DNA of 64,000 nucleotides from Setoptus koraiensis (Eukaryota; Animalia; Arthropoda): positions 19,840,001 to 19,904,000 of the forward strand of contig CM106586.1 of the NCBI GenBank assembly GCA_048013815.1. The letters run 5' to 3'. The notes beneath the pieces were generated by a model. That model did not search any database. It had not been told where the DNA came from and saw only the letters and a list, made by a program, of their open reading frames with translations. Positions 274 to 64,000 of the stretch are shown one piece after another (within the stretch, counting starts at the first letter, position 1; the number at the start of each line of letters is the position of its first letter). Made by a program: the position numbers and the translations under genes.

Positions 274-1248
274 TCATTTATTGTCATTGAGCGCGCTTTT
301 AACAGATTCTATCTCGATATAGTTGGCCGGTACCAAGCCGATAGTTTTACCATCCATTCTTGATGCCAGGAGCCAGCCTTGGACTTTTGGTTGAGCGTGG
401 GCGGGTGCCACTATAATCTTTTCATTTGCACTTAATGTCAGCTCATTTGCCATGTTGGTTTGGAATGGAAATTTGGCCACCGCTAGATAGTGAAAGCCGT
501 CTTGTTGGGCCCACCTTGTGGTATCCTGACCGGATGGTTGATCTTGCGTTTTGCCTTCATCTGACATCATGAGTTTATAAATGAGCCACGGTGTGCCCGT
601 AATAACGCTTAAAAACATGAATATTGGCCAAAGTCCACGCAAGGATTGATGCATCGCCGCACCGTTAGTAATGGAATGATCCAATGATTCTGACCAGGCC
701 AATTCGTTAGTGTCATTAACGTCTATCAGACGAAACATTTGAAGGACTCGTTGCAAAAATCTCTTAATTGTTTTCATAATTGTCAGCGATGCTAAAATAC
801 TGGTCATTAGATGTTTCAGACGAGCCATATGCTCAGCAACGCCTAATACGGCTCGAAATGATGAATGGACCGCAAAATATGTGGACTCCATGAGCATTGA
901 TACAGATGAGAATGCGTGTACTATGGATTCAATAGATTGGAATGCCCTACGTGAACTCTCCTCGGCCGCTCTAACAAAATCCACCTCCTGGGGCATACCG
1001 AAGCCAACTCCTCCGGGTGCTAGACCACTAAATCCGCCCGCCATTCCGTAACCCGACCCATAGGCGCCATAAGCTGATCCATAGGGTTGATAAGGTGACA
1101 TTCCATAGGGTGATCCCATGCCCATGCCTAAACCCATTCCCATTCCCATACCTAAACCAAACCGTTGATTGTAGGGCGACAAGGCACTGTACTGTTGTGT
1201 GGCTGACACCTCACCTGGCCTGGGTGGTACCGGCGGAGGTGCTGCCAT
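274..1248 (-). CDS. PEX13: Peroxisomal membrane protein PEX13 (intronless)
   Basis: Gly/Tyr/Met-rich N-terminus, Peroxin-13_N-like core (ESSRRAFQSIESIVHAFSSVSMLMESTYFAVHSSFRAVLGVAEH), TM segment (LWPIFMFLSVITGTPWLIYKL) and C-terminal SH3 (AVAKFPF...ELTL...GWLLAS...GLVPANYIEI). The likely start is the ATG at 1248 (MAAPPP); the ORF is open to 1281. Confidence 0.93.
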   Translation of the reverse strand: MAAPPPVPPRPGEVSATQQYSALSPYNQRFGLGMGMGMGLGMGMGSPYGMSPYQPYGSAYGAYGSGYGMAGGFSGLAPGGVGFGMPQEVDFVRAAEESSRRAFQSIESIVHAFSSVSMLMESTYFAVHSSFRAVLGVAEHMARLKHLMTSILASLTIMKTIKRFLQRVLQMFRLIDVNDTNELAWSESLDHSITNGAAMHQSLRGLWPIFMFLSVITGTPWLIYKLMMSDEGKTQDQPSGQDTTRWAQQDGFHYLAVAKFPFQTNMANELTLSANEKIIVAPAHAQPKVQGWLLASRMDGKTIGLVPANYIEIESVKSALNDNK

Positions 1249-4200
1249 TTTTGTGTCGATGTGTAAAAATAGATTTGACAATTATAAATAATAATATTTC
1301 CTAATATGAGTTGTGTATTAACGAGTCTAGCAACGAAATCAGAAAACCAGACTAGATGTAACGGTTGGCAAATCAGTGGTGAATGAGAAGAAAATGTAAA
1401 TATTGCGACGTCCTCGATACTGTTATAAAATTGCCAAGGCGCTAAATTTGAAACAAAGTAGCCGTTCTCAGGTTGGTTTGGTCGAGATGGATTCATCGGA
1501 TTTGGAATTGAAATTTTCCACACTGAGACAGCCAGCAACAGGTAACACAAGGTAATGAGCACTTTCTTACAGGCAAACCTGAACTGTTACGTAAGCTGTG
1601 AGTCGCCGCTCCCATTCCGAACGAGGGAGAGTGATTGGATGGCAGTTCTGACGCTTCTCGCAGAGAAAGGGGAGCTGTCTTGCAAGCTCCCATAGTCGCT
1701 CGGGGAGGCTGAAGTTGTTGTTGTCATGTAATGTTTATTTATCCTTTGGCTTGCCATTGCGACTGTACATGTCCCTCTGTCTGTATCGCGCTTCCTATGC
1801 TCGTATCCCTGTGCTACGTTGTTAGAGAGCCGGCGGCATTTGTGGCCAGGAGGTTATTGCGAATGTGTAAGCATACGATTAAGATATAAGATTTCGTTGC
1901 CGCCTTAGTGGCTCCGATACACTTGTGCTGTTGCTTTCGGCTGTAAGTGGGTTACATAACAAGTTTTCGCACATGACTATTGTGAGATGATTTGTGACTA
2001 TGATATCCGTCCGTATGTATCGTCATCGTCATGTCATAGTGAGAAAGAAACCTTTACTCCAACAATTAGTCGTGCCACCACTCAAGCAACGACCACCGGC
2101 TGACCGTTGGGTCTAGCCACCGGTGATGGTCAGTGCCAGTGATTAAGTAAATCACTGGCTCCTTTGTGGTGGGATTGCAGCGGCTTCGATTACCTGTTGC
2201 TGGTACTGGTGCTGGTGCTGCCGCTGTCGATCTGATTAAATGGAAGCGACACAATGCAGTGTGTGCACTTGGATTATTGTGCAAACAATAACAATGGCAC
2301 CATCGGTCCGACTATCAAACACGGACAATAACCATAATAACCATTGTGATAACGGTGCGATAGCGAAAATAATTATAATTCAAACACAAAGTATCAGCGC
2401 ATTAGTTGCACTTGTCCGCCACCAGTAGTACTAGGCCGAGACTGAAACTGCCGCTCGTTGTTATCCTCTACTAACAACTTGTAAGATACGACGATGCGCT
2501 GACGACGACGACGCCGACGCCGACGCCGACAATGTTGCCACTGCCGCCACTGCCGCTGCTGTCGACGATGATGATGTAATAATGAATTTGTATAATTCAA
2601 TTGCAAACCTGCTTGCCCGTTTGCTGCTGATGATGATGTAATATCATCGCAATCAACGACAGGTAAGAGCTGTTATTTGTTGGTCCTTCCTTGTTGTTGT
2701 TGTTGTTGTTGTTGCTTTCGTTGGTGTTGTTGGTGTTGCTGTCGTCGTTGTCGTCGTTGTCGTTGGCGAAAGATCGTGCCTCATGCTATCATCTGATCGG
2801 CCAGAGTGGCGCATCGTCATCAGGCTGTCTCGAGAATCAACTTGGCTACTTACGGACACTCAGGCTCATTACACACACCGGACACACAAACAACGGCAAC
2901 AACAACAACGGTCTGTATACTGACCGGAAAGAGAGCTTGTTGGTGGCAGTTTAGAGAAGTTTAGATTAACTGCATTGCGACAGCAACTGGCCAGACTGGA
3001 CACAATACTCGTTGTTGTTGTTGTTGCTGTTGTTGTTGCACACAAACTGACCAAAGCTGGCAAGACGAGGCGATCATTTAGGGCAACAAACGGTTTTCCG
3101 ACAATTCAGTAGGCACAATCGCACAAAGATCACCACTGTTCGAGCCTGTTGGCTAAAAATTAAAACATCTTGACTTTGAAGATACACATACAAGCGGCGG
3201 CGGCGCCAGTCTCCCTGTGGGCATCTTTTTCGAGTTGTAGTCACATCATGAGCTTGAGTGAGGATACAGGGAGAGTTAATCTCGCTCGTTTGATCGATCC
3301 AGGTCGTATTTTGAATGTATGCTAGTCGTATGTATGACAACTTCGTTTAAAAGTGGTTATATTATCCTGATATCGTCAAGTGAGAGCCACAGCCGAGCAT
3401 CAGGCATTAAAAAAGGAAAGTGAGCCCCTGTCCCTAGATAGATAAGTATTTTTTGCGCCAAAAGAATCGCATTAATCTACATCACAGAGTTGTAATAGTT
3501 GTCGACGCAACTTCCACATTCAACCATCATCATCGTGACAGTGGACACAACACAATGATACTTGTAATAATAGCAACAACGAGTGTCGCTAATTACTAAT
3601 GGCCACACACAATTAGTAGTAATCGTTTTGTTTCTATTCATGTCATTGCTGACCATTGTCTGTCTGCTGGCTCGGTCGCATTCACATCACGACAAAACCA
3701 AAACTGGACAACTAATTAGCTGGCAGCAGCTAATCAGTTTCTCTGTTATTATCAAATATGTAATTATAGCCAAGACCAGGAAATTAGATGAGCATGATCG
3801 ACCAAGCGCTCTACATCTATTCATCATCAACATGTGAATACATGTGAGCATGCTGATGTAGAGCAGCCTGATGCCATGATGCAACAACAACAAAAAATAG
3901 CCGGATAAACAAAAGTTGTGCATATATGAATATTAGTTGATACTGAGTCATGTGGAGTCATGTGGCATCAATCAACTGGCATTCTCATTTGCATGACTAG
4001 TGGCCAGTTGCGGCCGCAAAGGTTTCCCGATCATATTCATACATGAATCCCGAATTTAAGTAAATTTGTCCATATTTTAACCAGATTACCATTGCCCAAA
4101 TTCGTTCACGATCCATGTTGTTGTTGTTGGACCTCATAAATTTTCAATTTTGTATTCCTTTTAGAGGCACAAAGGAAGCCACAACCGTTATGATGGATCG

Positions 4201-26588: not shown

Positions 26589-29500
26589 ATGACAGCCATC
26601 GTCGATATTGATCCAGCAGACAATGACACAAATATGACAGGCGAATTGGGAGTCAAGTCGAAGTCGGCAAGCCGAGCGAGCCGAGACAGTCAAGCCCGAG
26701 ACAGTCGGCCGTCGATGGCGGCGCCGATTTGCGCCGCCAACAACCAAATGACAGTTAACAGGGAAGACAGGCTGCCGACAATGTTGTTGCATCATCAGCA
26801 GCAGCATCGGCCGGCGCAAACCAATTCGGGCAGTTCGAGCAATTCGGGCAATTCGGGCAATTTGAGCAGTTTGAGCCCCAACGACGACGATGATATCGAG
26901 ATTCAGCGCCAGTCGCAGCCAGCCAAAAGCAAGAGCAAAACGCGCGCCACCATAGCCGACCAATTACTGGCCTCAGTCGGCTACGCCAGACACTCTAATC
27001 AGCATCATCAATCAGAGCCAATCACTAATCGTAATTCATTAATAAACAGACACACCGCAGACCATTGCGCAATCACCAGAATAGATAATTTTGTTGATGC
27101 GCCGCAAAGTAGCAGCGCCAAGTCAGCTGTTGGCTTGTTTTCGAAGGCACTAATTAGTAGAAGAAAATTGAGAGTTAACGACGACGCTGGCCGACAGCAC
27201 AAGTCGAGCTCGCAAATTGAACAAGCGCAGCGCCATTGTGACTGCGGTTGCGCAACTAAACAAACTACAAGTATAAACAATAACAGTAATTTATTATTAT
27301 ACAACAACATTCCCAGAAGTTCATCGACCAGCGCCATAGGTGGCGTTGCAAGAGCACACCAAGATCCTAGTGACGACGAAAGCCAACTACAGCAGCAACA
27401 GCAGCAACAACAAATATCGGCCAATCATCAAGAAATATCCGCCAATCAGCAGCAGCGCCAACACAAAATTAAATCACGAATCCGACAGGTGAAAAAGGCG
27501 CGCGATCGGCAACGATCGCTGTGCTCGTTGGAAACCGTTGGCACCCAGTGTCCGCCAAACCCTTTAGACAGTGGCCAATATTGTGCGGTTCCGCCGCCGG
27601 AAACGACCAATAACAAGCCCCATCATCAGTTAAAAAGCTGCCGCCAAAAAGCGCCACCAGTCGGCGGCTGCGATTGTCTAGTTGGGTACGACAACAGCAA
27701 CCGCGACAAGTGCAACTCCTCGAGAGATGTCGCTGTTGAGCACATAGACACGACAGACGACAACAATTACAATCACGACAACAACAATTATGACAACAAC
27801 GGACAAACCGCTTGCCGGCAAGCTGGCAAGCTGACATTGGCCGATGGTTACGCGAACCAGCCGGCGAGGGCAACAGCCACAACAGCGACGCCAAGAGGTC
27901 GCCTGTCGGCCTGTTGTGCAAGCGAGAATTTGCATAAGGATCACAGCAGCAACAGCAGCAACAACAACGGCAACAAAAACGGCAACAACAACGCCAACAA
28001 CAGCAGCAACAACAAACAACAACAGGCCATAGACAGCAAGATCGGGATCATTAATAACTGTTGTTGCTGCTCGGCGGGACGCGATTTAGTGGGCTCGCAA
28101 TCGCAATTGGCGCGCTCTGGCGGCGAGCTCAAGTTGTTCAAAAACAAGATAAATTGCAAGCCGAAAGTGTTCGACCTTGATTGTTGTTCTTATTGTTGTC
28201 GTCATTTCACAGCAACAGCAACAGCAACAACGGCAACAACAACGGCAACAACAACGGCAACGGCCACGACAAGCACGAATGTGGTTTCAATTAAACAACA
28301 ACAACAGCAGTCTATTAGCGGCAGTTGTGGTGTGATAGATGGCGATAGTGGCGTGGCTTGCGAGCATTTATTGTTATTATCAAACTGTAATAAACAAAAC
28401 CGATCATCATCATTAGCTGCAACTGCAGCAGCGCCGCTGGCGGGCGCCGAAAGAAGCAGACACAAATCGAGCCACACAATTGGCAAGCCAGCTTGCCATT
28501 GCGCGCCCATAAGCACCGCCAACACCAACAACAGCAACAGCAACCACAACAGCAGCAACAACAACAACAACAACAATAGCAACAGCGACAGTCATAGATC
28601 AAATTGGTTGTTAACAACGAGACAGCCGGCACAGATTGCGGCGAGCAGGCAGCAAAAGTACGTGAAGCAGCCCGTCATCAGGCTGCCCGGCGAGTGCAAT
28701 CAGTGCCAGCGGCTCGCCAACAATAGTCACCCGGCTAGTCATGCAAATGCAATGAGCGAGACACAAGAAACGAAGAGTCACTACCGACACGACAAGTCAC
28801 AGCCGACATTGAGTTTCAATTTACAGTCGGGCGCAACGGGCGCGTCGGCCAACACCAGCTCGAGCGATAATTTATGCAAATCGTCCAACAACAACAACAG
28901 CAACAACAACAGCAACAACAACAGCTACAACAGCAACACCGTGTGCTGCCCTGTTCATATTGGCGAGCCAGATATGAGCAGGCACGCCGACGACAACGAC
29001 AACAACTCAATCAAGAACTCATTACATCACGATCACACGATCAACAGTCAGCATCAATATAGTTATCATAGGCGTTTGCATCACCGCCAACGAGACCAAA
29101 ATGGCACGCCAACGACAACAGGTGACGCCACCCACGACACCGGCATTGATATTGATACCGATATTGATGGCAATGAGGTCGGCAGCAACACGACAGCAAC
29201 GACAACAGCGACACCAACAACAACAGCAGCAACAACAACCGACAACCACAAACAACAGAGAAGGGCCAAAACGAGCAAAATATTGCGAGAAGATGAAGAC
29301 GAAGAAGAAGAAAATAACAAAATATCTGCCAACAACAATGTGCACCAACAGCAACAAGATGGCGCCCCCTACGACGAATCGTCCAGCTCGCTGTCGTTGT
29401 CGTTGTGCTCGCTGAACAGTGTGGCCAGTAGCGCTGGCTTACAGTATCCGAGCACAATGGCGCCGGGCGCCAATCGGCCAGCGCGTTCTAGGGGCCCGCA

Positions 29501-29648
29501 AGAGGCCGCCGATGTCGCCATGACAACAGCGTCCGCCAGAGAGCGCCAGCAGCAGCAGCAAGCAACCCCAAACAGAGAGCGCAAATCGATTGGCCAGCCG
29601 CTCGTGACAGGTGACATTGATTGCAGTGACAACTGTGCCGGTGCGTGC

Positions 29649-29682
<34 letters not shown>

Positions 29683-32600
29683 GCAACAACAACAACAACA
29701 GCAACACCGACAACAGCAGCAACAGCAACAACAGAAACAACAACAACGACGACGACGAAAATATCAACATCAGACTGCTGGCGACCAAGGCGAACAAGCA
29801 ACAACATCAAGCCAAAAAACAGATCGTCGCGCCAAGTGCAACAGCAGACGCGACAGGTGCTCACCTGTTGGAGCTGTCATCGGCCGGCGGCAACGGGCAA
29901 CAGCGCAGCGGTGACATTCATCAGCTGGAGAACAGATTGCGCCGACTGAAGAATTATTATCCGTCGCCGGTTGGCTCGTCGCCGTTCGTCGTTGCACCCA
30001 TGAAACCCTTCTCGCTCACTAGACGTCGCCAGTCGCAACGGCTGTTGCGCCGACAACCGAGAAAACCGCGACCGCCCGCGCCCGCACCGCCCGTCAACAG
30101 GCCAGCGGCCCTGAACGACGCAACCGCCGGCGCCAAAACAAGCGCCGACAAGTTGTCAGTGAGGGCCGTGGCGCGTTGCAACTGCTGCGAGCATCCGGTC
30201 AGCGGACAATCCGCCCAGGACAAACCGTCCCGAATCAATGCCGAATCAAATAATACCGACATTGCGCCAAATGCGGGCGCCGCCGCGTCGGACAAGCAGC
30301 AACAACAGCGCGACATTGTGTCCGACAACGACAGCGGTCTGACCAGCGACCAGGCCAGCAACGGGTCGTCGACGCCGCCGCAACAACTTCACCACAGCCA
30401 GCAGCTGCCATCTAGGGACGCTGGCGGCGACAACGACACCCGGCAAACCGGCCCGACACCCGAGCCAGTTGCCGAGCCTAACATGCTGAGCGACACGGAG
30501 ATGCTGCAAATTGAACTATTTCTGCGCGGCCACAAATCCACCGTTTACGTGTGCCGCTGCATGGCCAATTTGTATTTTACCCGAACGGATCTGGTGGACG
30601 GCGGGCGCTGCTCGAAGGCCATCAGCGACGAGTGGCAATTGCACAATACGGGCGTGCCCGTGCTCACATTTGACTCGGGTCTGGCGCGCAGCCGCAACAA
30701 GCGCCGGCTCAACATCAGCCTGACGGAACGCGGTTCCGGTTTTGTGCTGTGGTCGGACATTATTGACAATTTGAGCGGGTATCACGCCAGCAACGGCCAG
30801 GCAACCTTTCACACCATGTACGTGAGCAGCAATCACAGACGAATGGCGGGCTTCAGTTTCGACGACGAGCACAGCGCCCGCCAATTCCTGCACCAGGTGG
30901 AGGTGATCACCTCGAACCCGTTGAACATATCGCTGACGGGCCCCAAAATCGGCACGCTGCGCAACGCGCTCGGACACAAGCGACGCTCCGCGGCTTACAC
31001 GTTTGCCAGGCGCTTCCGGTTGCCGTTTACCGGCGGCGGGGGCGGCGGTCAGCGAGCTGCCGGCTACAAACAGCAGCCGGCCAGTGCGCAAGCAGCAGTG
31101 ATTACGCAACAGACTGTGATGATGGGCACCAAGCGCCAGGCACATTTGAATAAATTGGCGCGAAAAAACAACAACAACACTAACGAGGTGGGCGACCAAG
31201 GCGAGCTAGCCGGCGGCTCGCTGGTGGCGTCGTGTGGCGGCCATCACCAGCAATTAGTTGGCGAGGTTAGTCGAGAATCGCGAATCTGTCAGGCGACACA
31301 ACTGTACAACTGCAAGCAAGAGCAACAACAACAACAACAACAAGCAAATGGGCCAGTTCCTCAGTACACAAACAATGGCTCGACCTCGTGGCTCTCGTTC
31401 AAGCGTGCGCTATCCTTTGGCGCGCCCCACTCGCCTGGTGGCGCCACCAGCGGCTCACACTCAATGCACGATCAGGGTGACACACCGACGGACAGAGGTC
31501 TGAGACAGGAAGTGACACTTTGCAACGTGCACAATTTGCACGTTGCAAACGGCGCCGACCAAGTGAGCGCTGTGCCACGAGCGCGAAATTCCATAGCGGC
31601 CGTATCGACCACGGGGCTCAATTTGAGGCCCGTTTCCATGACAGACCAGCTACTGGAGCAGCAGCTGGCCCAGGCCAAGAGTCAGCTCGAGCTGGACAAG
31701 CAACCGGCGACGTCGTCGTCGTCGAGGCTGCTCAAAAGCCGCAACAAGCCAAAATTGCCCAAAAAATGCGACATTTCGGCGCCGTGCCAATTTCAGCACG
31801 TTACACGCGTCGATTTGGACGGCCTGATGCAACTCTACTCCAAGAGCCTAGTCACGCCCGCCGGCCCCGGACCGGGCGGCAGCGCGGGCTTGCAGCAACA
31901 AAGTGATAAAAGTGGCCAGCCTATCAAGAGCCCGTCGCCCGAGCTGTTGCCGTCGCCGCCCAAACTGGCCAACAAATGTTTGGCCAATGCCACTTCCGGT
32001 AACTCTAATCAAAGCACGAGCGACACTTGCGCACCGAGCGGGTCGGACGCGAGCTCAATCAGGGCTCACGAATCGGCGCCTCACAGCGATGCCCGTCACA
32101 GCGATGCCCGTCATGGCATGATCAAATCGTCGAGCCCGCCGAGTGTCAGCTATCAACGGAGCGGCGTGCAACAACAACAACAACAACAACAGTGCTCACA
32201 CAATCTCGTGATACCGCTCTCGTCGTCGTCGGCCTCGTCGTCGCCCTCGTGCTACTCGTCGGCCTCGGCCTCACCTGTCGGCTCGGATCTCGGCATGAGC
32301 GCCACGGTGCAGTCCGCTCAACAGGTGACGGCCAGATCGACCGGCCACAATGTCGGGCTGCCGCAGCCGCAGCAACAGCCAGGCGGCCAGCAAAAACAAA
32401 ACACTCACGTCTCCAAACACAGGGGCGAACCGCCTCAAGTTCCGGTGCGAACAACGCCCCCGTTGGCGCAAAACCAAGGCACCAAGTCCGAGTGTCCGCT
32501 ACCGAACCGGTGCGCGCCGACTGGCGGCGATGCAAACCAGACGGGCGCCAGCAAGCTGGCCCAATTGCCGCTTCCGTCCGAAGTGCCGGCGGACTTGATT

Positions 32601-33557
32601 GAATTGAAGCGCAAACTAATGGCCGACATACCCGGCCAGGCGGCCGCTCGGGCCGCAAGTCGGCTCGATCGCATGGAGCGAGCGGCCAAGCAGGCGGCCA
32701 GAGATTGCCCGAAATTTGAGTTTGCGTCTAGCGGCTCAAACTCAAACTCAAACTTGAGCGGCCAGGTAGCCAGGCGGTCGTCGCTGACGTCTTCGTCGTC
32801 CTCCTCGACCTCGTTGTCGTCCTCGTCCTTCAAACCCGATCTCACTGAAAATGCCGCACTCACTTCATACGACGATTCAAACGATGATCGCGCCGAAACA
32901 ATCACAATATTGCACCAATGCGAAAAGGTGACCAAGCTCAAGAGATCATCGGTTAATTGTTGCGCCAAAGAGCACACCAGAACGAGCAACAATTTAGCGG
33001 CCGTCCAGCAATGGAGAAGAAATCAACAAACAACTAATAATAATAATAATTGCGTCACTACAGCGATTTCAAACTACGCCAAAGCGATAGAAGCAAACGC
33101 AGATAAAAACACTGACGACTCGACGGGTCCGTTTAACGGTGTGACAACACGCCAACGAAACTCAACGGGCCACTCAATGTCGTCCAAGAGTTCGGTCAGT
33201 TCGGGATATCACGAGGAAGAAATAGTGTCAGAGACGAAAAATGGCCCAAACAACCAACAAACAAATGGAAAAACAAACAACCAACAAACTAACACACAGC
33301 AGACCGATCAGCAGCGCGAAGACGCCACTAAAATTCAATTGAAGTCCACATCCGGTCGCCATCCGAACAACCAAAACAAACAGCAGCCCGTTGCGTCAGT
33401 TGTCAAATCGATATTGAAAAGCAACCAAATGACCAAGTATGAACGTAACAATAACGACGACACTCATACAGTGTCCGAAGAGATCACAAGCAATGCATTG
33501 GTTAAACAGAAACAAACAACCTTCGTGGACGACGAAGTCAGTTCATCTTATTTGTAG
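26589..33557 (+). CDS. Giant single-exon EVH1/WH1-domain + CRIB-motif protein, 2322 aa (WASP/Spred-superfamily-like; possibly MESR3-like)
   Basis: 6969-bp uninterrupted ORF. EVH1/WH1-like domain at about 30483-30930 (CRCMANLYF...WQLHNTGVPVLTFD...GFVLWSDII...FHTMYVS...MAGFSFDDEHSARQFLHQV). CRIB-like motif ISAPCQFQHVTRV at about 31773-31811. The remainder is poly-Q/N/T/S low complexity. The MESR3 similarity is from memory and was not searched. Confidence 0.85.
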
Positions 33558-38845: not shown

Positions 38846-40892
38846 TTATGGTGACGATTTCCATACTTTTCTTGTACAATAGTCGCTAGCAGCACAAGCT
38901 TTAGCATGAGCCGAAGATTGACACCAGTAGCCAGGTCCGAAGGAACATTTTGCGGCACCTAATAGATGCTTGTTGGAACTTTTGGGGCACAAACCTATGT
39001 CCTGACACAGTTGTTTTGGACTGTTCATGGTGCCTATAGCTCTCAATATCTCGGGTCCGAACGTGTCGATAATGAGACGGCATTCGTTGCGATTGGAGTT
39101 GGGAAAATTGTTACAAATGGTATCAACTAGATGAGAGATGTCCCTGTCCACAGATTGAGTGGCTAGTAATTTGTCTATATAGGCTACTGTTGATTCGCAA
39201 GTATCGCAGTAATTGTCATTTCTGGTCAGACTGTCTAGGTTTGGTTTCGGTTTGCACATTTCTATATCTTCACAAAACTCTTCACCGTTAAGCTTATGCA
39301 CTATGACTTCGAAGATTTTTCCCGAGTATTCTTCGACCATTCTTCTGCAAGTTTTAGCCACGTCCTTATCAGTTATTTGTGCGCATATTTTGTTTTCCAA
39401 TATATTCTTCAACTCGTTCTCTGACTGCACGTTGGATAATTTGCTCTTGACGAAGTGAATAAATAACTTGCATTCTAAACAAGCTTCGCTTGTTGCGTTG
39501 AGGATCTCATCCAATTGAGTGAAGAATGTCTTGAATGAGCCCGTCTGGGTTGATGGTGGCGACTCGCGGTGTTTAGCGGGAACGGGTGACATCCTGTTTG
39601 GCACGTCATAGGTGCACAAGTCAAGCATCATGCAAACCAACTCAGGAGCGCTCTCGTCGATCAAGATTTTAACGATTTCATCGGCGTACCGATCGACAAA
39701 TTCATCACACTGCTTGCGTTTGGGACCAGCTTTGTAAACAATTTGGCAGACCTCTCTCAGAGCTGCTTCAATGCTTTCCTCTGTGCGATTTTGGTTAATT
39801 AGCGGAAGTATTTGTTTGATAACGGTCTTGCACAGCATGCATGGTACCGCGTCTTTGTGTTCTACCGATGAGACATCCTTGTCTTGAGCCGGCTCGATAA
39901 GTTTGACGCTCGTCTGGGGGCCAAGACTAGCAAAATCGTCGAGGGTTGGCAAGAGCATATCCTGAAAGTATGAAGACACGATAGTTGATTTTTTGGGACA
40001 CAGCTGTACTGCGGCACAATATGCCTTGGCGTTCATGTGCTCCACGAATTGTATCAATTGATCGAATTGGTTGTTGAGCAGATCGTCGCATTCTTGGTCC
40101 TGGTGGATTTTGTTGAGATAGCTGCAGAGCTGCTTGATACCGTCTCTGATTTGGTTGACATTCTTTGGATCTGTGAGACTCTCCTTGAATTGGTTGACTG
40201 TGTCGACACAAATGTTGCAAACAACATCCCCGTCGTCTTGATCTGATGTTGCGCGTAATGCCGTCGTGCCGTCAATCTCTGCCGGTCCGCAGGCACCGAT
40301 TTGGTCGCAGTGTGAGGCCGGATTAATGTTGTCCATGGTCTGGAACATCTTGGCGACCATGTATTGGCACTGTTTTGTATAGAATGGTTGTTAGAATCGG
40401 GTGTTAGAATCGGGTGTTAGAATCGGGTGCAAGTGCTGGCTGCATAATGAACGACGACAGACAGTGTGTTGGGTGGCAAAGAACGAATACTTACGGGACC
40501 GTCTCTGTAGTCGGTGGCGGCCGGATATTGTTCGCGACAGAAGCGCATCATAGCGTCTCTGAATGCGCCTCTGGTGGCCGTGCTGTTCAAGCGATGCAAA
40601 TACGACACAGTCGATTTGCACCCCTGACAAAAGTTGGAGCCAGCCGGTTGTTTTGTTACGTCTTGGTGGGCCCGCGCTGCAATTGATCGTGAACACGGGT
40701 TAATTAATCGTTGGTTGAGTTTTGCAATAGACTGTGAGTGAATACTATTCAGCCGTTCCAGCTATTCACCGAACAGCTGACGGAACGGGAAGGTCAGGGG
40801 GAAAATTGATAGGGATACTCACCGATTTGAATGAAGGCGCAAGCAACCATGAGAACGACTGCCAGTTGGGCAGCGTTTCGAATAAAAGCCAT
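38846..40892 (-). CDS. PSAP: Prosaposin-like precursor, 591 aa, 3 exons
   Basis: join(40823-40892, 40495-40676, 38846-40369); both introns are GT-AG and phases are consistent (1, 0). Signal peptide MAFIRNAAQLAVVLMVACAFIQIA, five saposin-B domains (CxxC...C...C...C-x5-C) and a C-terminal saposin-A motif (LLGAAKCSFGPGYWCQSSAHAKACAASDYC). Confidence 0.92.
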
Positions 40893-46016: not shown

Positions 46017-46142
46017 GAGAGCCGAGAGCCGAGAGCCGAGAATCGAGAATCGAGAATCGAGAATCGAGAATCGAGAATCGAGAATCGAGAATCGAGAATC
46101 GAGAATCGAGAATCGAGAATCGAGAATCGAGAATCGAGAATT
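46017..46142 (+). repeat. Heptamer array: (GAGAGCC)3 followed by (GAGAATC)~15
   Basis: 126 bp = 18 x 7 bp; the last unit is gagaatt. Confidence 0.97.
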
Positions 46143-46330
46143 GAGAAGCTTTTTTGCTGCCATCGCTCGAAACAACAGCCAGCACACATCGCTCGCTATT
46201 CACCGCCACTGCTCGCTTGCTCATATCCGCTCACCCGGAACGCGGCCACCCGGTAACTCGGGTGCCTGCTAATGAATTGCTCGTGTTCAGCCAGGGAGAG
46301 AGAGATTTGGGTCTCGGTCGAGGTCGGCTC

Positions 46331-46336
46331 TTTATT
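46331..46336 (-). terminator. Polyadenylation signal AATAAA after the Yorkie-like stop codon
   Basis: Minus strand reads TGA ttatgta AATAAA. Confidence 0.55.
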
Positions 46337-46343
46337 TACATAA

Positions 46344-47297
46344 TCACAGAAATTCTTCGATTTCCTCCGGTGCCAGATTTGGCAAGATGTCGCCACTGCC
46401 GGCTGCTGCATTGGCGGCCGGATCGAGCGCCGGTGGGGCCGCACAAGCTTGACTGGCCGGCGCATTCGGGCCACCACACCAATAGGCCGGCTGGCGCGGG
46501 CCGGCGAGCCCAACCAACTGCGGTATCACTGCGGTTGCCGGTGGTGAAGTAATTGCTGCTGCTGCAACTGGCTGATGCAACATCGAACAGTGTTTGTGTG
46601 TATTGTTTGCTTGCCATAGCGATGGTAGCCAAGTGTCTTGGCGGTTGCACAAATTGGTTGCTGCCAGCTGATTGTGACACTTGTCAAACATGATGCCAGA
46701 CTCGAGTTGGTGTTGGTGTTGACCATGTTGATGATGCAAGCGTTGTTGCGGCGTGTTGTTGTTGTTGTAATTACCGTCCGGGCTGTTGCTTACTTGATGA
46801 CAACAACGCTCCAGGTGAGCGGGACCAGCGTAACTGGCCGATGCTGTTGCTCGCTTCATGTCATGGTCACTTTTTGTTGTCATTGTTGTTGCTGCGATTA
46901 GACTGTTGTTGTTCTTTGGATAATTATTATAATTGTTGTTGTTTATTTCACTAAATGACTGCTGATTTTTTGACGACATGCAACCACAGCCACTGCCCAT
47001 TGGCAATTTCGGCAGCGTCGTGTTACAGGCCGTGGCACCCGCGCCAATCAACATGAACGCCGGCGTAGTGCTCGTGGGCTGCGGTTCGAAGAACGACCTC
47101 GGCAACTGACGCTGCCGCAGTGGCAAGCTAGCTCGCCGTGACGTCCCGCTTGCTCCGGGCGTCAAAATACAAAAAAGTTCCTCTAGGTCCTTCATGGTGC
47201 CTCTGTTGGCCTTCTGCTGCTGCTGTTGCTGTTGCTGATGTTGTGGCTTGTCGATGTTGTTGATGTTGACACAGTTACTTTGTTGCATTGTATGCAA
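46344..47297 (-). CDS. Yorkie/YAP-like TEAD-binding-domain protein lacking WW domains, 317 aa, intronless
   Basis: KDLEELFCILTPG...LPLRQRQLPRSFFEP matches the Yki/YAP TEAD-binding helix plus omega-loop (recalled Yki: LQALFDSVLNP...LPLRMRKLPNSFFTPP). Acidic/hydrophobic C-terminus (GDILPNLAPEEIEEFL). AATAAA at 46331-46336 just after the stop. Confidence 0.75.
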   Translation of the reverse strand: MHTMQQSNCVNINNIDKPQHQQQQQQQQKANRGTMKDLEELFCILTPGASGTSRRASLPLRQRQLPRSFFEPQPTSTTPAFMLIGAGATACNTTLPKLPMGSGCGCMSSKNQQSFSEINNNNYNNYPKNNNSLIAATTMTTKSDHDMKRATASASYAGPAHLERCCHQVSNSPDGNYNNNNTPQQRLHHQHGQHQHQLESGIMFDKCHNQLAATNLCNRQDTWLPSLWQANNTHKHCSMLHQPVAAAAITSPPATAVIPQLVGLAGPRQPAYWCGGPNAPASQACAAPPALDPAANAAAGSGDILPNLAPEEIEEFL

Positions 47298-48032
47298 ATA
47301 TCACATGCTCAACCTGACACAACTGACAGTTGACAATTGCCGCTACTCAGCAACAACAACAACAACAAACGAGCAACACTGTCTGTCGTGTGTTTATCTC
47401 CAACAACCGGCTGTCATTCCGCCGACAACTACTATACGCTGCTGCTGAACGCTGCTGGTCGTGGTGCCATATGCTCCTGATGTATATATATTTATATATT
47501 TAGCAGTAAGTGGTTGCCAGTAACACAATTGCCACAACACTAGCGAACACGAAATAGTAAAACTAAATACAAAATCCACCTTCACACAGCTACCTTGATG
47601 ACGACTGCCACGGTGCTGGTATTGCGTTTCAGAAAGTGTCAGTCATTGTCATTGCCACTATACCTCTAGCTTGGCAAGTTTAATTCTGCAGTTACTCTTG
47701 GGCACATCTATTTATTTCGCCGTTGTTTCCAACCTAATGATGATACACGCCATGATATACAAACAAAACAAAAACAAAAACTAGCCATCTCTGTATGCCA
47801 TCTACAGTAATTTACAGTCTCCAAATATGGCTACTGTTGCTAATGCCTCGATTGTCTCGAAATCTATGTAATCTATCATTATTATGTATATTGTATGTAT
47901 GCTGGTGCTGCTAAATGCGAAAATTTATTCAATTATAACTTTTTTTAACGCGCAATGTTCAAATGTGCGATAAGAGAGATCGATTTTAATTGGATTATAA
48001 TAAGCGTTTATAATAACGATTATAACACGACT

Positions 48033-51000
48033 TCACATCCAGTCGATTTGATCGACAATACTATCTGATTTGTTGCGACGATTCCTTTCTGCGCCAGGCG
48101 CTGCCTCAAAGGTGGACTGATCAATTCTGTTTAGTCCAATGAGATTCTTAATTTCGGAAATAGCAATAATTAATTTGCGTCTATGAAGAAATGGCAAGCC
48201 TAAATCGGCAAGGTCATTCTCTGTAAGATTAAATAAAGTACCTAGATCAATGTCATGCTGACTGAATAATCCAAAATATTGCACCAGTCCAATGCGGCTC
48301 AGAAATTCGGTCAAATTTAAATAAGAGGACAATTCATCATTGCTTCTACTGTTGCCGCTAGTGCTTGTTTGATTGTTGCTGCTGTTTTGATTATTAGTCG
48401 ACTGGGTAGAATTAATAAGCAGTCTGGCATTAAGCCAGCTAGTATCTGGTTGTGATTCGCGACGCGTAACTTCGTCCAACATGTTGCTCTGAGTGAATAA
48501 CGGACCTCGATAAGACGAAAGGCCACCGCGGCCACCACTTACACTCCCGCCGCTTCCGCTGGCCCCACTTCCGCTTCCGCGTGAGTTGATGGAGGAAGAT
48601 GAGCCCTGATCCCAAATGTTGTGACTAATAGTCGATTCGGACATTGATCGAGAGAAACCCTGACCCGCCCAGAGGGGTGTGGGCAGCCTAGGTTTTTCAG
48701 CGCAAGGTTTTGCCATCATGGCCTTGACTGCCTTAAGTCTGAACTCATCATAGTTCAAATGCTGATTGTCTAATCCAGTCTCAGACAGCGACCTGGAGCC
48801 TCCTAAACCTGGCGGCGCTGGAATTAGTCGCTGCTCTATGTTTCGGTTGGTCAGAGTTTGTTGCTGTTGAGACGATGGCTGTTGCTGGAGTTGTTGCGAA
48901 AGCTGTTGTTGTTGCTGGTGATGCTGTTGCTGGTTATGTTGTTGCTGGTGATGATTGTGATAATGATGTTGATTGTTGCTCTGTTGATGAACAATCTGTT
49001 GCTGCTGTTGTTGTTGCTGGGGCTGAGCATCCTGGGGAACAATTAGCCGCTTTTCTATACTCTTTAACATGGGCAACACTGAATCAGGTGCCAATTGTTT
49101 GAGTTGCTGCGCTATTAAAGCTTGAAACACCTTCGGATTTGGCGACTGACTTGGTGTTAACGGGCCTGTTGGTGGATTGGTGGCGCACTGAGGTAAAAGC
49201 ATAGAGGATAATTTGCTACATAATTTAAAAGCATGTTGATCGCAACATGATGGCACTTCGTTATCATCAAGATCCAGTATCTGCTTGCGGACTTCAAACA
49301 ATAGACGCGAGTCTCTTTCTGGTCCGCGCACCACGATGGATTTTGTGTTCTGTCTTTGCTTTGGTTTTATTAAAATAGTAATTTGCTATTGGGGGAACGC
49401 GATGAAATTAAAGATTGTAAGAATCACAGTGCACGAGAGATAAACTAGACACTGAAAGATTATGGACAAAAGATTGTCAAAGAGTGATTTTTGATTTTTT
49501 CAAATGTTGACTTACTCGCATGTGATCCATCAATTGTGTCACTTGAACTGCGTCCACCTCTTGTCCTTCTTTAAGATCAAATATTAAAATAAGAGGCAGA
49601 TGACCTAACAACTCCTGCCAAGCGCAATACACCGATTCAAAATTTGGACCACGTATACTTATAGACGTCTTCCTGTTTGACTGTTGCTGGTAATTGCCAG
49701 GCGATCCTCCAAGAGACGCATTCAAGGATGAGCTAGTATTAGAGTGGCCATAAATAGTTGGTTGTGTTGGTGTAGATCCAAATTGAGATGAGTGTTGTTG
49801 TTGTTGTTGCTGCTGATGTATAGAAATACCATTGTTGTTGTTCAAATCGGTGGTTGAGATAGTGGTGGTAGTGGTGGTGCTATTAATATTATTATTGTTA
49901 ATGGTGCTGTTGTTGTTATTGTTATTATTATTATTAATTGAGCTTGGCAGGCCGCTAGAAGTACCGGGATCTGGCATTGTTATCACGGCGCCTGTTGATT
50001 GCATGATGGCTCTGATGTTGTTGTTTAAGCGACCCATTATAAAAGAGTGATGCTGAACGGCCACATCAACGGTCATCATTAATGGAACATTGATAGAGTT
50101 GGCACTAAATCCTGTCAAATACTCGATAAGGACCGATAAACCTTGTCGTAGTCCGGTGATATGAGATCGAGTACCTCGCACTGCAACGGTTATAATGCCC
50201 GACGAGGCGAAGTAAGAGTTGTTGTTACATTTGGAATCATCATAACGGAATGCAATAGTGATACCATAGTTTTGTTGTATGGCCTGCAATTGTGGCGATT
50301 GGGGATCTAATGTTGGCGGCGAATGTAAGCCATTGTTTAGTGGCAAATCAAATTGTAACGTAATAGGCAACATGTCTCTGATGCGACAACGCGATTGTTC
50401 AACGCCAATGGCCGTGCCAGCTATTGACACCTGATTGGATTTTTCCGCCATATTAGTGCGATTAGAATCAGGAAAGTGTATGTGGCATCCAGTTTCATCC
50501 ATGACACGCTGTATAGAGCGGCCGCCCTTGCCTATAATGTGCGAATGATCAGTGAATGCAACATCCATTTTCAGCGTGACCCTATTGCGTCTAGTGTCCA
50601 ATTGCTCATATATGATCTCTTTTGCCGCGTTGATTGAGTGCGGACTTCCGGTTATGCGAACATGAGGATCCTTTTTTGACTTGGTGCCTGGCTTTAGTTT
50701 TGGCGGCCACATAATTTGAGTGTTGGTGGATTGCATGACTTTTCTAAAAAACGAATCGGCGTCACTTCCGTAGTCCGTATTATCTGCGGTGTGTATTGAT
50801 GGGTCCGTATAGTGTGGATTGTATAGTGTGGATTGTATAGTGTGGTTGGTATTGTGTGGTGGATGGGGGGATGTGGGACATGTATAATAATTGGTGTTAA
50901 CATTGTTTGGCTGAACATTGGCGAGTGCTGACGAACAACAACAAAGAACTGAGAGCGAGCATGTGGCCGGCACACGGCGAGCACGGCGTGTGTCGCGGTG

Positions 51001-51162
51001 TCTTGTAGCGCGGTGTTTATCGTTAGCTGGGGGGGACTTACCGTTGAGCATTTGTTCAAAACGTTTCCTGTCGACCTTGACTCGCTCCTCAACCATCCCA
51101 TTGAGATCCTCGCTGACCATCATGTTGCCGGTGGTGTTGGTGTTGTTGTTCGGGTCGCCCAT
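48033..51162 (-). CDS. BicC: Bicaudal-C (KH domains + SAM domain), 913 aa, 3 exons
   Basis: join(51042-51162, 49516-50783, 48033-49385); GT-AG introns, phases 1 and 0. Hallmarks: VDRKRFEQML, FFRKVMQSTNTQIMWPPKLKPGTKSKKDPHVRITG, HSHIIGKGGRSIQRVMDETGCHIHFPDSN, WAGQGFSRSM, and a C-terminal SAM (LSRIGLVQYFGLFSQHDIDLGTLFNLTENDLADLGL). Confidence 0.93.
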
Positions 51163-52773
51163 CTTGGTCAACACACTTACCCACAATGCTCTCCGTCGAG
51201 GGTTGTATCTCAATTGGGGTGACTGGGTGTGGGGGGTCTAGTGAGGTTAGTCTGTGTGTGAGTGAGATTGGGTGAGGAAATTGTGTATCAGCCTTGTCGT
51301 CTTCACGGTTGTCACTAAACAGTGTGTTAGGTAATACAGTTACTTTTATATACTTTATCCTCTTTGTGTCTGGCTGTCTGATACCAACACACTCTGTATT
51401 GGACTGTGTTGGTGTCTATTGGAGACTCTCTATATGTATGTATGTGTGTATGTATCGCTCTCACTTGGTGGCGTTAAACTCAATCACACTTTAGATAATC
51501 AGTGGGAGTTTCTCTGAGTCTCTGTCGTGGGCACAGCGATAATTGTGGTCCATTCACCATTCACAAACCAGTATCGTCATTGTTGTCGCTCCTGTAGCTG
51601 CTGCTGCTTGTTAGATGCTCTGTACCTTGGCTAATTGTTTGGATGTGGCTGCAATTAATGTCCCACTCTCATACGCTGTCTCATATGCTGTATTTGTCGC
51701 CTGACGAATTGATAGCCGCCTTGCAATTTGTTTGTCGCCTTTCGATTTGTGTCTGTCGACGGCCTACAATGTCGCTGTTGCGTTGCATTGGTGCTCGGCG
51801 CGTTTTTCGAGTCCTCGCACAACTTGCTGTTGCTGTTGCCGTATCGGTTGTGTGTGTGCACTGGCCAACAATCGATATACGACAATTATTATTGATTATT
51901 GATTATTTCTTACAAGACGGCTTTTATCGGCTAGGCTCGATACCCATTACACGGCCGTTGTATAACAACATATGATCTGATAATAAATAGCAATGCCTAA
52001 CCAGAGCAACATGTGTGTCAACAATGAGCGCTGCACTGGCATATATAATAGGTGCACAGTGCATAAATCTAGTCTAGTTGGCCACTTCTTTCCCCCCCAT
52101 CCCTGTTTAGTGAGTGCACCAAACACTGTGCCTCACTATGCATGGGCCAGCACAAATCCTATTCAAACACTATTCCTCCCCTTTTTCGCCTTTTCGTCTA
52201 CGCGTGGTACGCGTCCGCCTTTGGCCTGACTCGGCAAATTTGCAACAAATTCACTGGCAACTTGTTAGTTGATTTGCCAACGTTTGGCCTATAGGCGTCG
52301 CACTTCGGCTGCTCCAATGTATGTACGATGCACACTGTTTGTGACACACTTCAGCACCCTCTATATGTTGCGCCCAACTACACTTGCTGCAACTTGCTGG
52401 CGTGCGCACAAACGATAGCTCACAAAACACAATTTAATGAATGTTGTGCATAACTGCAATCAATTAGTGCACCCCTATTCGCGCTTCTGACCCATTTAGT
52501 TTGCCCGACTGCTCGCGCACACACTTTTCGCTTCATGCAAAATTCAATATTGTGCAGCACATAAGAAGAGCCTCGATACTGGCAATATTTCACAGTGAAA
52601 TAATATCTCAACAATTATACGTATATATAGTAATAAATTATTATACAGTGCGGCGCTCGTTGCAGTTGCACCTGAACACCTTGAAGTTCAAACTATGCAG
52701 TTCAAGGCCTTAGCAAGGAGACAAAAATATATTAAACAAAAATGTACATTTTGTTTGTATATATTTTTATTAT

Positions 52774-53880
52774 TTACATAACATTAGCAAATAAGGCCGC
52801 TCTATTCTGGAGTTCGCCACGCTTGACCCAATGCTGATACACTCTAAATGCGCACCCGTCTATTGCCTTCCTCAGAATCTTTATGTGGTAGGGATTGGCT
52901 CTTATGGCTTCGGGGTATAAGGTTTCTGGTGTAAAACGAAGTCTTCTCACTCTAATGGAGGCTCTTACAACAAGACCTAGCACTTTGAATGCCTTATGAG
53001 CGTCAAATTTTTTCGTTGTAAGGCTACCAATGAAATAACTGTGCTGCAGACATTCCGTGGCCGTGATACGCTCAGATGGTTCAACAGTTAATTGGCGTCT
53101 TATTAAATCTTTTGGTGGTTCCGTTATGGTGTCCCATTCTGGGGAACAAAACTCATATTTTCCCTCCATGATGCTCCTGAGCATTATAAGCTGTTTGCGG
53201 TGCCAAAATGGAGGAAATCCGGCCAATAGTGTGTACATGATAACCCCGCAGGCCCAAATATCGACTGCTTGCTCGTATCCGGGCGCATCATCATACATGG
53301 CTGCTCTAAGCAACTCGGGTGCCAAATAACCGGGCGTTCCGCATAGGTCATACAATCTTTCGTTTGGTCCTAGTGTTTTTGCAAAACCAAAATCGCTAAC
53401 TTTGATATTATAATTGTCATCTAATAGTATATTCTCTGGTTTAAGATCACGATGAACAACATTCTTTGAATGTACATAGGCCACTGCTTCAAACAATTGT
53501 TTCATAATCATGCGCGTCTTCTTTTCTGACAGGGCAACAACACTGGTGAGGTAGTCAAATAATTCGCCGTTTTTACACAATTCAAACACTAAAAATATAT
53601 ATGTGCTAGACTCAAAGACATCATATAATTCTATAATGTAGGGATGTCCGGATACTTGTCTCAAAACGTTTATCTCGCGCCAGGTGGCTTGCCGTATTGT
53701 GCAACCAGTGGAGTCTTCCATGTCGCCTGATACATCTATTATTTTAGCGGCATATTCTCTACCTGTTGCCTTTTCGACGCATCTCCTCACGGTGCTTGAT
53801 ACTCCGCGCCCGAGCACTTCTTTTGGCTCGAAACGGGCATAAAATTCGTGGGCCACATCCTTCCCTGGCAGTTCGTCCAT
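52774..53880 (-). CDS. PHKG: Phosphorylase b kinase gamma catalytic subunit, 368 aa, intronless
   Basis: Kinase motifs LGRGVSSTVRRC, YAAKIID, HRDLKPENILL, DFG and CGTPGYLAPE; PPFWHRKQLIMLRSIMEG; calmodulin-binding C-tail (LRKAIDGCAFRVYQHWVKRGELQNRAALF). Confidence 0.96.
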   Translation of the reverse strand: MDELPGKDVAHEFYARFEPKEVLGRGVSSTVRRCVEKATGREYAAKIIDVSGDMEDSTGCTIRQATWREINVLRQVSGHPYIIELYDVFESSTYIFLVFELCKNGELFDYLTSVVALSEKKTRMIMKQLFEAVAYVHSKNVVHRDLKPENILLDDNYNIKVSDFGFAKTLGPNERLYDLCGTPGYLAPELLRAAMYDDAPGYEQAVDIWACGVIMYTLLAGFPPFWHRKQLIMLRSIMEGKYEFCSPEWDTITEPPKDLIRRQLTVEPSERITATECLQHSYFIGSLTTKKFDAHKAFKVLGLVVRASIRVRRLRFTPETLYPEAIRANPYHIKILRKAIDGCAFRVYQHWVKRGELQNRAALFANVM

Positions 53881-63048: not shown

Positions 63049-63478
63049 TCAGTTGATTTCCGGCACCCACAGGCGACTCGTGACCAGTCCGATGCTGTCG
63101 TGCGGGTGCGGGTGCTGTTGCGCTGACGCGCACGAGCGCGACCACGACAACGAGTGTATTATCTCCAACGTGGCGCCCTCAAGCTCGCCAGTCTGGCTGG
63201 TCGCGTATCCCACCACAGTGACCATTTTTGTGCTTGCGGCGCCTTGCCAACTGCAGTCCATTGCGACTGGCACATTGGGGCGATTCTGATTGGCCGCTGG
63301 CTGCTTTTTTCCCGTGCAATGGCCCGACGACCATTTGTCGGCGCCCCATTGCTGCTTGTGGCCCGTGTTGGTCGCGCGATATTGGCTGGCCAGGTGGCGC
63401 TTGCTGCTGAATGGCGCGCTGCCCGTCAGTGAGCCCGTCAAATCTAGCTGTCCTGGCTGCTGCTTCCGGTTCTGGCTA

Positions 63479-63510
<32 letters not shown>

Positions 63511-64000
63511 AGTTGTTGCGCTGCCCGCTGGCTGCTTGCTGGCGCCCTGCTGCTGGTGCTCCGGGCAACCGCAGCTGACCGGCTGGCTCAATTGTTGCGA
63601 CAGTGTCTGTATGTAATCGATGGCGCAGCGCAACGTGTCCACTTTCGATAGCTTGCGCTCGTGCGGCAGCACGGGAATCCGGTAGCGGAGCGTCTGCGGT
63701 GCACATCATTTCCGGTCGCACAAGATACGCGATAATTGACATGATTTGTTAAGTTGATATGATAAGTTAATATTGTTGATTATATTATTAATTGTTAATG
63801 TTGTATGATTTGCATAATAATTACATAATTACTATGCATGAACTGCTAGCGACGCTGCCGGCGATTACATAATCATATTGTTATACTGACCTCGAAGCCG
63901 CGATTTATGGATTGCATGCGGCGCCGTTCGCGCAAATTTGCCAATTTCCTGTGATAGACCTTTATGCTGTGTATGGAGTCGCAGCTAGCGGCGTATTGTC
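63049..64000 (-). CDS. PTF1A: PTF1a/Fer1 (48-related) bHLH transcription factor, 5'-partial
   Basis: join(63891->64000, 63049-63693), with a phase-0 GT-AG intron at 63694-63890. bHLH: RKLANLRERRRMQSINRGFE|TLRYRIPVLPHERKLSKVDTLRCAIDYIQTL. The C-terminal HSLSW and LWVPE motifs are diagnostic of PTF1a. The frame is open to the window edge. Confidence 0.88.

Follow-up and report, generated by a model that had tools for sequence, protein, structure and literature searches.

Organization of the locus

The window, the 64-kb stretch of Setoptus koraiensis DNA analyzed here, contains on its minus strand an intronless ORF spanning 46344..47297, whose first ATG, at 47288 in the ORF listing, yields a protein of 314 aa. 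The frame is bounded upstream by an in-frame TGA at 47303-47301, five codons 5' of this ATG. The predicted product is rich in A, Q, N and P, and its gene is framed by the following features:

46347..47288, minus strand: coding sequence of 314 codons, stop at 46344-46346, from the ORF list and its translation
47195, minus strand: ATG of an alternative start, M32, giving a 283-aa protein that begins MKDLEELF
46337-46332, minus strand: poly(A) signal AATAAA, starting 7 nt past the stop, with an RNA-derived contig ending at 46311
47321..47326, minus strand: initiator-like TCAGTT, a putative promoter element 33 nt upstream of the ATG, in a conserved 17-nt block shared with the closest relative (L003)
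47483..47520, minus strand: conserved TATA-like block (…CTGCTAAATATATAAATATATATAC…), a putative element found by alignment with L003

A perfect (GAGAATC)n microsatellite of ~15 copies lies at 46037-46141, 200 nt 3' of the poly(A) site. Beyond the 3' end of the ORF, ~6 kb are free of any convincing ORF, followed by a saposin gene. The remaining genes of the window are:

277-1281, minus strand: Pex13 (Peroxin-13_N and SH3)
26589-33557, plus strand: uninterrupted S/N/A/Q-rich ORF of 2322 codons, with a strong A-over-T skew and no Pfam match
38849-40360, minus strand: prosaposin-like protein
47903-51213, minus strand: Bicaudal-C (BicC), KH exons ~49516-51213 and SAM exon 48036-49385
49386-49515, minus strand: BicC intron of 130 nt, GT..AG, confirmed by a spliced contig of run X4
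52777-53880, minus strand: Ser/Thr kinase, in synteny with BicC in every relative
63052-63672, minus strand: bHLH protein

The 2322-codon ORF may encode a large disordered protein; antisense ORFs of ~200 aa overlap it. Within BicC, a poly-Q/H stretch at ~48880-49000 draws thousands of repeat contigs, and the segment 49785-49946 has zero depth in all four sequencing runs described below, though contigs span the right letter count, which may be a filter artefact.

A YAP-type motif near the N-terminus

Two segments in the first quarter of the ORF protein can be aligned with the elements of YAP known as interfaces 2 and 3:

47172..47189, minus strand: interface-2 helix DLEELF (LxxLF), residues 34-39, aligned to YAP1 DLEALF in PDB peptides
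47082..47126, minus strand: interface-3 omega loop LPLRQRQLPRSFFEP, residues 55-69, from Pfam TEADIR3 and PDB alignments

The TEAD-binding pattern conserved across the family reads LxxLF … PxxxRxLPxSFFxxP (PMC9710580). When the 49-aa motif region was compared by phmmer with all PDB chains, the nine best matches were YAP1 TEAD-binding peptides (E 0.004-0.04), with the helix and the loop both aligned, and a FAM181A omega-loop peptide ranked next (E 0.14). The linker between the two elements, F39-L57, is 17 residues long versus 16 in human YAP (F69-M86). The initial annotation had proposed a YAP/Yki-type helix and omega loop at Yki-like spacing, and both the peptide matches (best E 0.004) and the linker length bear this out.

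Hot-spot positions of the YAP-TEAD interface include M86, R89, L91, S94, F95, F96 and P98. In the alignment, their equivalents in the ORF protein are L57, R60, L62, S65, F66, F67 and P69, interspersed with four adjacent residues that are unlike YAP (Q59, Q61, R64 and E68). The Pfam model TEADIR3 (PF15238) gives the whole protein 20.7 bits and the segment 24.1 bits (E 4e-5); the gathering cut-off is 26 bits, which makes the omega loop a divergent match that falls slightly short of the threshold. A human YAP peptide, scored for comparison, reaches 35.3 bits. Apart from this loop, itself below the cut-off, a Pfam scan of the ORF protein at E<=1 returned nothing, and no interface-1 strand is recognizable in the protein.

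DLEELF is the sole match to [DE]L.xLF in a regular-expression search of all six frames of the window. The frequency of the full motif was estimated analytically from the window's six-frame residue frequencies, for a helix and omega core spaced by 10-25 residues in an open frame:

Helix and omega core, 60-Mb genome: ~7e-4 expected by chance
Helix and omega core, 250,000 windows: ~0.18 expected by chance
Fuller pattern, 250,000 windows: ~2e-4 expected by chance

By these estimates, the TEAD-binding motif is not a chance match.

Missing Hippo-control elements and a candidate phosphorylation site

The elements through which Hippo signaling acts on Yki were searched for in the protein and in its surroundings. 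A Pfam scan (E<=1) found no WW domain in the ORF protein, and regular expressions found no credible WW pattern in the six frames of the 64-kb window, where three loose W…W..P matches lack the other features of a WW domain. Nor does H-x-[RK]-x-x-[ST] occur anywhere in the 314 residues. The absence of both WW domains and HxRxxS sites, claimed from the initial reading of the DNA, was thus confirmed by three separate scans: the six-frame regular expression, the Pfam scan and the protein regular expression. The Tondu motif was likewise missing from the six frames of the window and had no Pfam match in the ORF. That the exon might be spliced to WW-encoding exons had been named as a point to check; it is unlikely, because the RNA-derived contig runs colinearly across the stop codon and no WW pattern occurs in the 46 kb downstream.

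The protein carries a site of a different kind just ahead of the omega loop:

47121..47138, minus strand: RRASLP, residues 51-56, a Kemptide-like candidate site for a basophilic (PKA-type) kinase, of RxxSxP shape, from sequence and regular expression

The residue at -5 is Thr, not His. RRASL is the core of Kemptide, and the RxxSxP shape is that of the 14-3-3 site at YAP S127. The position of RRASLP against the omega loop means that another kinase may control binding, a caveat to any description of the protein as uncoupled, and RRASLP may act as a phospho-switch for TEAD binding that is independent of Hippo.

Predicted disorder and the acidic C-terminus

A single-sequence AlphaFold2 model of the ORF protein has a mean pLDDT of 38, and its sole secondary structure is a helix at residues 307-313. 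The highest pLDDT values fall within the acidic motif at the C-terminus:

46347..46397, minus strand: acidic-hydrophobic motif SGDILPNLAPEEIEEFL, the last 17 residues, identical in the second copy and containing the predicted helix

The protein ends in ...DILPNLAPEEIEEFL, and the motif finishes with …PEEIEEFL. What was first described as an acidic, TAD-like end therefore stands as an acidic C-terminus that bears the only predicted helix, and the low-complexity sequence noted after the TEAD-binding motif corresponds to an A/Q/N/P-rich composition with predicted disorder. Overall, the modeled protein looks like a disordered chain with short linear motifs.

Coding signal and transcription

When a codon log-likelihood statistic was trained on five clear genes of the same window, the frame of the ORF alone gave positive values (0.13-0.17 bits per codon), and this holds in each third of its length. 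Four public runs, X1-X4, cover this stretch, and none of them is recorded as RNA. X1-X3 are genomic, because their contigs retain the BicC intron; the kind of X4 is unstated, and it was taken as RNA-derived because its BicC contig skips exactly 49386-49515, a GT..AG intron. One portion of the gene is represented in X4:

46311..46764, minus strand: 454 nt of the gene seen in RNA-derived contigs 46311-46554 and 46549-46764

Both contigs match the window without differences and run colinearly across the stop codon, and the one that ends at 46311 does so 21 nt past AATAAA, so that the stop of the ORF marks the real C-terminus and the 3' half of the gene is transcribed. The depth of X4 over this half is close to its depth over BicC. 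The initial description of an intronless ORF with AATAAA just past its stop agrees with these data, given the signal at 46337-46332 and the contig that crosses the stop. X4 is empty over 46765-47902, so the observed transcription covers the 3' half, and the motif-bearing 5' half lies outside the RNA contigs; the contigs break off in a (CAA)n run, and gaps in contig coverage prove nothing.

The possibility that the ORF lies within the 3' UTR of BicC was rejected. BicC ends at 48033, has its own AATAAA at 47928-47923, and its transcript finishes near 47903, where an X4 contig ends 20 nt past that signal. The TEAD-binder ORF is probably a real gene.

A second, diverged copy

The genomic runs contain additional contigs that differ from the window by 8-14% over ~46399-47445, strongest in X3 and weaker in X1 and X2. 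A second haplotype was considered as their source and rejected, the doubling of the summed depth being confined to ~46300-47450. The divergent contigs were read as a paralogue, and the genome holds two diverged copies. The duplicated unit, ~46300-47445, has roughly the extent of the transcript.

The last 114 codons of the second copy remain open in the ORF's frame despite ~28 substitutions and indels that amount to a net -12 nt, and the other two frames acquire stops. Over these 114 codons, pS is 0.18, pN is 0.078 and dN/dS is ~0.4, all approximate values, since the second copy was rebuilt from an incomplete list, that of the best-supported listed differences only. The last 17 residues are the same in both copies. 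The contigs of both the main and the variant set break at 47082-47109 and rejoin there, which suggests that this stretch is identical in the two copies; it encodes (R)QLPRSFFEP, the core of the omega loop.

Distribution and synteny

In a search with the BicC KH exon, the nearest relative with a name was Aceria tosichella (87% identity), and many eriophyoid contigs matched as well, which places the genome among the plant-feeding eriophyoid mites. In contigs of seven relatives (L001, L002, L004-L009), the kinase and BicC are followed by HSF (on the opposite strand), endosulfine and peptidase M14. HSF, endosulfine and peptidase M14 are all absent from the 64-kb window, which puts the gene exactly at a break in synteny. 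No motif-bearing ORF occurs within 10 kb downstream of BicC in these seven more distant relatives. TRAPPC9 is also found downstream of BicC in other eriophyoid relatives.

The closest relative, L003, with 86% nucleotide identity in BicC, is colinear with the window past BicC. It shares the upstream blocks, namely the TATA-like run and CAACTGTCAGTTGTGT with the initiator-like TCAGTT (window 47326-47321), and an ATG-CAA start followed by ~20 open codons up to the end of the contig in a (CAA)n run; the position of the motif would fall beyond the contig. The colinear locus and its conserved blocks are thus common to at least two species.

Beyond these two species, no homologue was recovered. A phmmer search with the full ORF against 1.84 billion representative proteins, other eriophyoid gene sets included, gave 0 matches at E<=1e-3; a word-index protein search found no relative of the whole ORF or of residues 25-80; a feature search of the ESM Atlas returned no usable match; when JGI metagenome contigs were scanned with the back-translated 49-aa motif region, 600 pattern matches arose, of which 0 were confirmed; and a look-up of the exact ORF product found it not on record. 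Outside its motif, the predicted protein is an orphan in these searches. The apparent conservation is that between the window and one paralogue, rebuilt from the incomplete difference list, together with ~20 codons of one orthologue. The gene is probably young and confined to a narrow lineage of eriophyoid mites.

A candidate Scalloped/TEAD partner, probably outside Warts control

Taken as a whole, the explanation we favor, with confidence somewhat better than even, is that the locus holds a real, expressed, single-exon gene, present in two copies and restricted to one lineage, for a disordered TEAD-docking protein outside Warts/LATS control. The product would be a disordered protein of ~31-34 kDa with a YAP/Yki-type TEAD-binding domain near its N-terminus, in which all YAP hot-spot positions of the omega loop are conserved, and it would most likely dock via interfaces 2 and 3 onto the YAP-binding domain of the mite Scalloped (Sd)/TEAD, where it would compete with the mite's Yki-like protein. 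Lacking WW domains, it could not use PPxY partners; lacking an HxRxxS site, it should not be a substrate of Warts/LATS. Its output would pass through the Q/N-rich regions and the acidic helix that is strictly conserved at its C-terminus (…PEEIEEFL). RRASLP is a candidate binding switch that could operate via a basophilic kinase and 14-3-3, and docking could be gated by a phosphate on S54 or S65. As for the direction of its effect, the invariant C-terminal helix and the Q-rich stretches hint at a role as effector or activator, and judging by these sequence features we lean, slightly, toward a co-activator or adaptor over a pure decoy.

The strongest rival, one we consider possible but clearly less probable, is that the gene arose by DNA- or RNA-mediated duplication of the TEAD-binding first part of the mite's own yki-like gene, has since diverged and may be neutral or decaying. 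Such a duplicate would be expected to look much like this locus in several respects: the motif lies near the N-terminus with the YAP/Yki linker length, unlike FAM181 and PERCC1; the gene is intronless and the duplicated unit (~46300-47445) roughly equals a transcript; and the distribution is narrow, with the locus at a synteny break. However, no similarity to anything is detectable outside the motif, and the dN/dS of ~0.4, the frame-preserving indels and the invariant C-terminal motif argue against decay. Such a derivation, which the initial annotation had also offered as an option, is plausible.

It is very unlikely that the frame is open by chance, in DNA of low complexity and poor in stops, and that a coincidental motif lies in a non-coding RNA. 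The region does hold several overlapping ORFs of ~100 aa on both strands, the protein is of low complexity, predicted to be disordered and free of known homologues, and its motif-bearing half lies outside the X4 RNA contigs; yet the pattern is expected only ~7e-4 times per genome, the codon statistic favors a single frame in every third of the ORF, the frame of the second copy stays open after indels as the other two gain stops, and the omega-loop core and C-terminal motif are conserved between the copies.

Slightly less credible still is a mite orthologue of FAM181 or PERCC1: its sole Pfam match is to TEADIR3, formerly the FAM181 family, the FAM181A omega peptide matches at E 0.14 and PERCC1 is reported to occur in chelicerates and not in hexapods (PMC9710580), but both families have an N-terminal helical region and a central motif versus 33 residues before the helix here, YAP peptides match better than FAM181, and no relative emerged from 1.84e9 proteins though other eriophyoid gene sets were included.

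To return to the favored reading, a gene for a TEAD-docking protein outside Warts/LATS control, its host lineage combines a streamlined genome with a partly dismantled Fat/Hippo input. The eriophyoid A. lycopersici is without fat, dachs and four-jointed (PMC7738191), so that input to the Hippo pathway is already reduced in eriophyoids. A broader proposal, which we regard as improbable, is that the output has been rewired further, with Sd/TEAD served by a few WW-less YAP-type cofactors, free of Warts and under a PKA-type switch by the omega loop. If this rewiring were true, one of the smallest animals would offer a natural experiment in TEAD activation that is independent of Hippo. Even the narrower claim of Sd binding, if true, would show how easily the motif is redeployed into Hippo-insensitive TEAD partners.

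To our knowledge, few WW-less proteins carry a TEAD-binding motif of the YAP type (FAM181A/B, PERCC1), and what they do is poorly understood. The gene would be an independent and very young arthropod example. Its architecture is pared down to the docking motif and a conserved C-terminal helix, and its two copies allow comparison. As such, it may serve as a minimal natural scaffold for asking what a co-activator or a decoy needs besides TEAD docking.

Comparison with known TEAD-binding families

Yki/YAP/TAZ: Members of this family have one or two WW domains and HxRxxS sites for Warts/LATS phosphorylation and 14-3-3 binding. The ORF protein has in common with them the LxxLF helix, the linker (17 versus 16 residues), an omega loop with YAP-equivalent positions, the N-terminal placement of the motif and an acidic C-terminal end, and its best PDB matches are YAP1. 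It differs in having no WW domain, no HxRxxS and no recognizable interface-1 strand, in lacking similarity outside the motif, and in being a chain of ~314 aa that is predicted to be fully disordered. Judged by its sequence, it is not a canonical Yki, as it carries the TEAD-binding motif of the family but neither of the other two characters.

FAM181 and PERCC1: Both families have a conserved N-terminal helical region and a centrally placed motif, which in human PERCC1 covers residues 173-222, and PERCC1 also has a conserved C-terminal region; it is reported from chelicerates and as absent from hexapods (PMC9710580). In the ORF protein, the LxxLF helix has just 33 residues before it, among which AlphaFold2 predicts no helix, and an in-frame stop lies upstream; a motif that starts at residue 34 leaves no room for the conserved N-terminal regions of these families. 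Like FAM181A/B, the ORF protein is WW-less and has a TEAD-binding omega loop, with weak matches to TEADIR3 and the FAM181A peptide; unlike them, it stays below the TEADIR3 cut-off (a near miss) and cannot accommodate the conserved N-terminal region. With PERCC1, it shares a small size, proline and glutamate content, the lack of WW domains, interfaces 2 and 3, and a Ser equivalent to YAP S94, whereas the N-terminal helix, central motif position and conserved C-terminal region of PERCC1 are not detected in it. The FAM181/PERCC1-like membership that the initial annotation had offered as one option is not supported, the motif at 34-69 being a misfit to the architecture in published descriptions of the two families.

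Vestigial/VGLL and Tgi/VGLL4: These are also WW-less cofactors that compete with Yki for Sd/TEAD, as the ORF protein might. Vg also uses an omega loop (PMC7566471). The difference lies in the docking element: theirs is the Tondu motif, of which the window has none, whereas the ORF protein would bind via its LxxLF helix.
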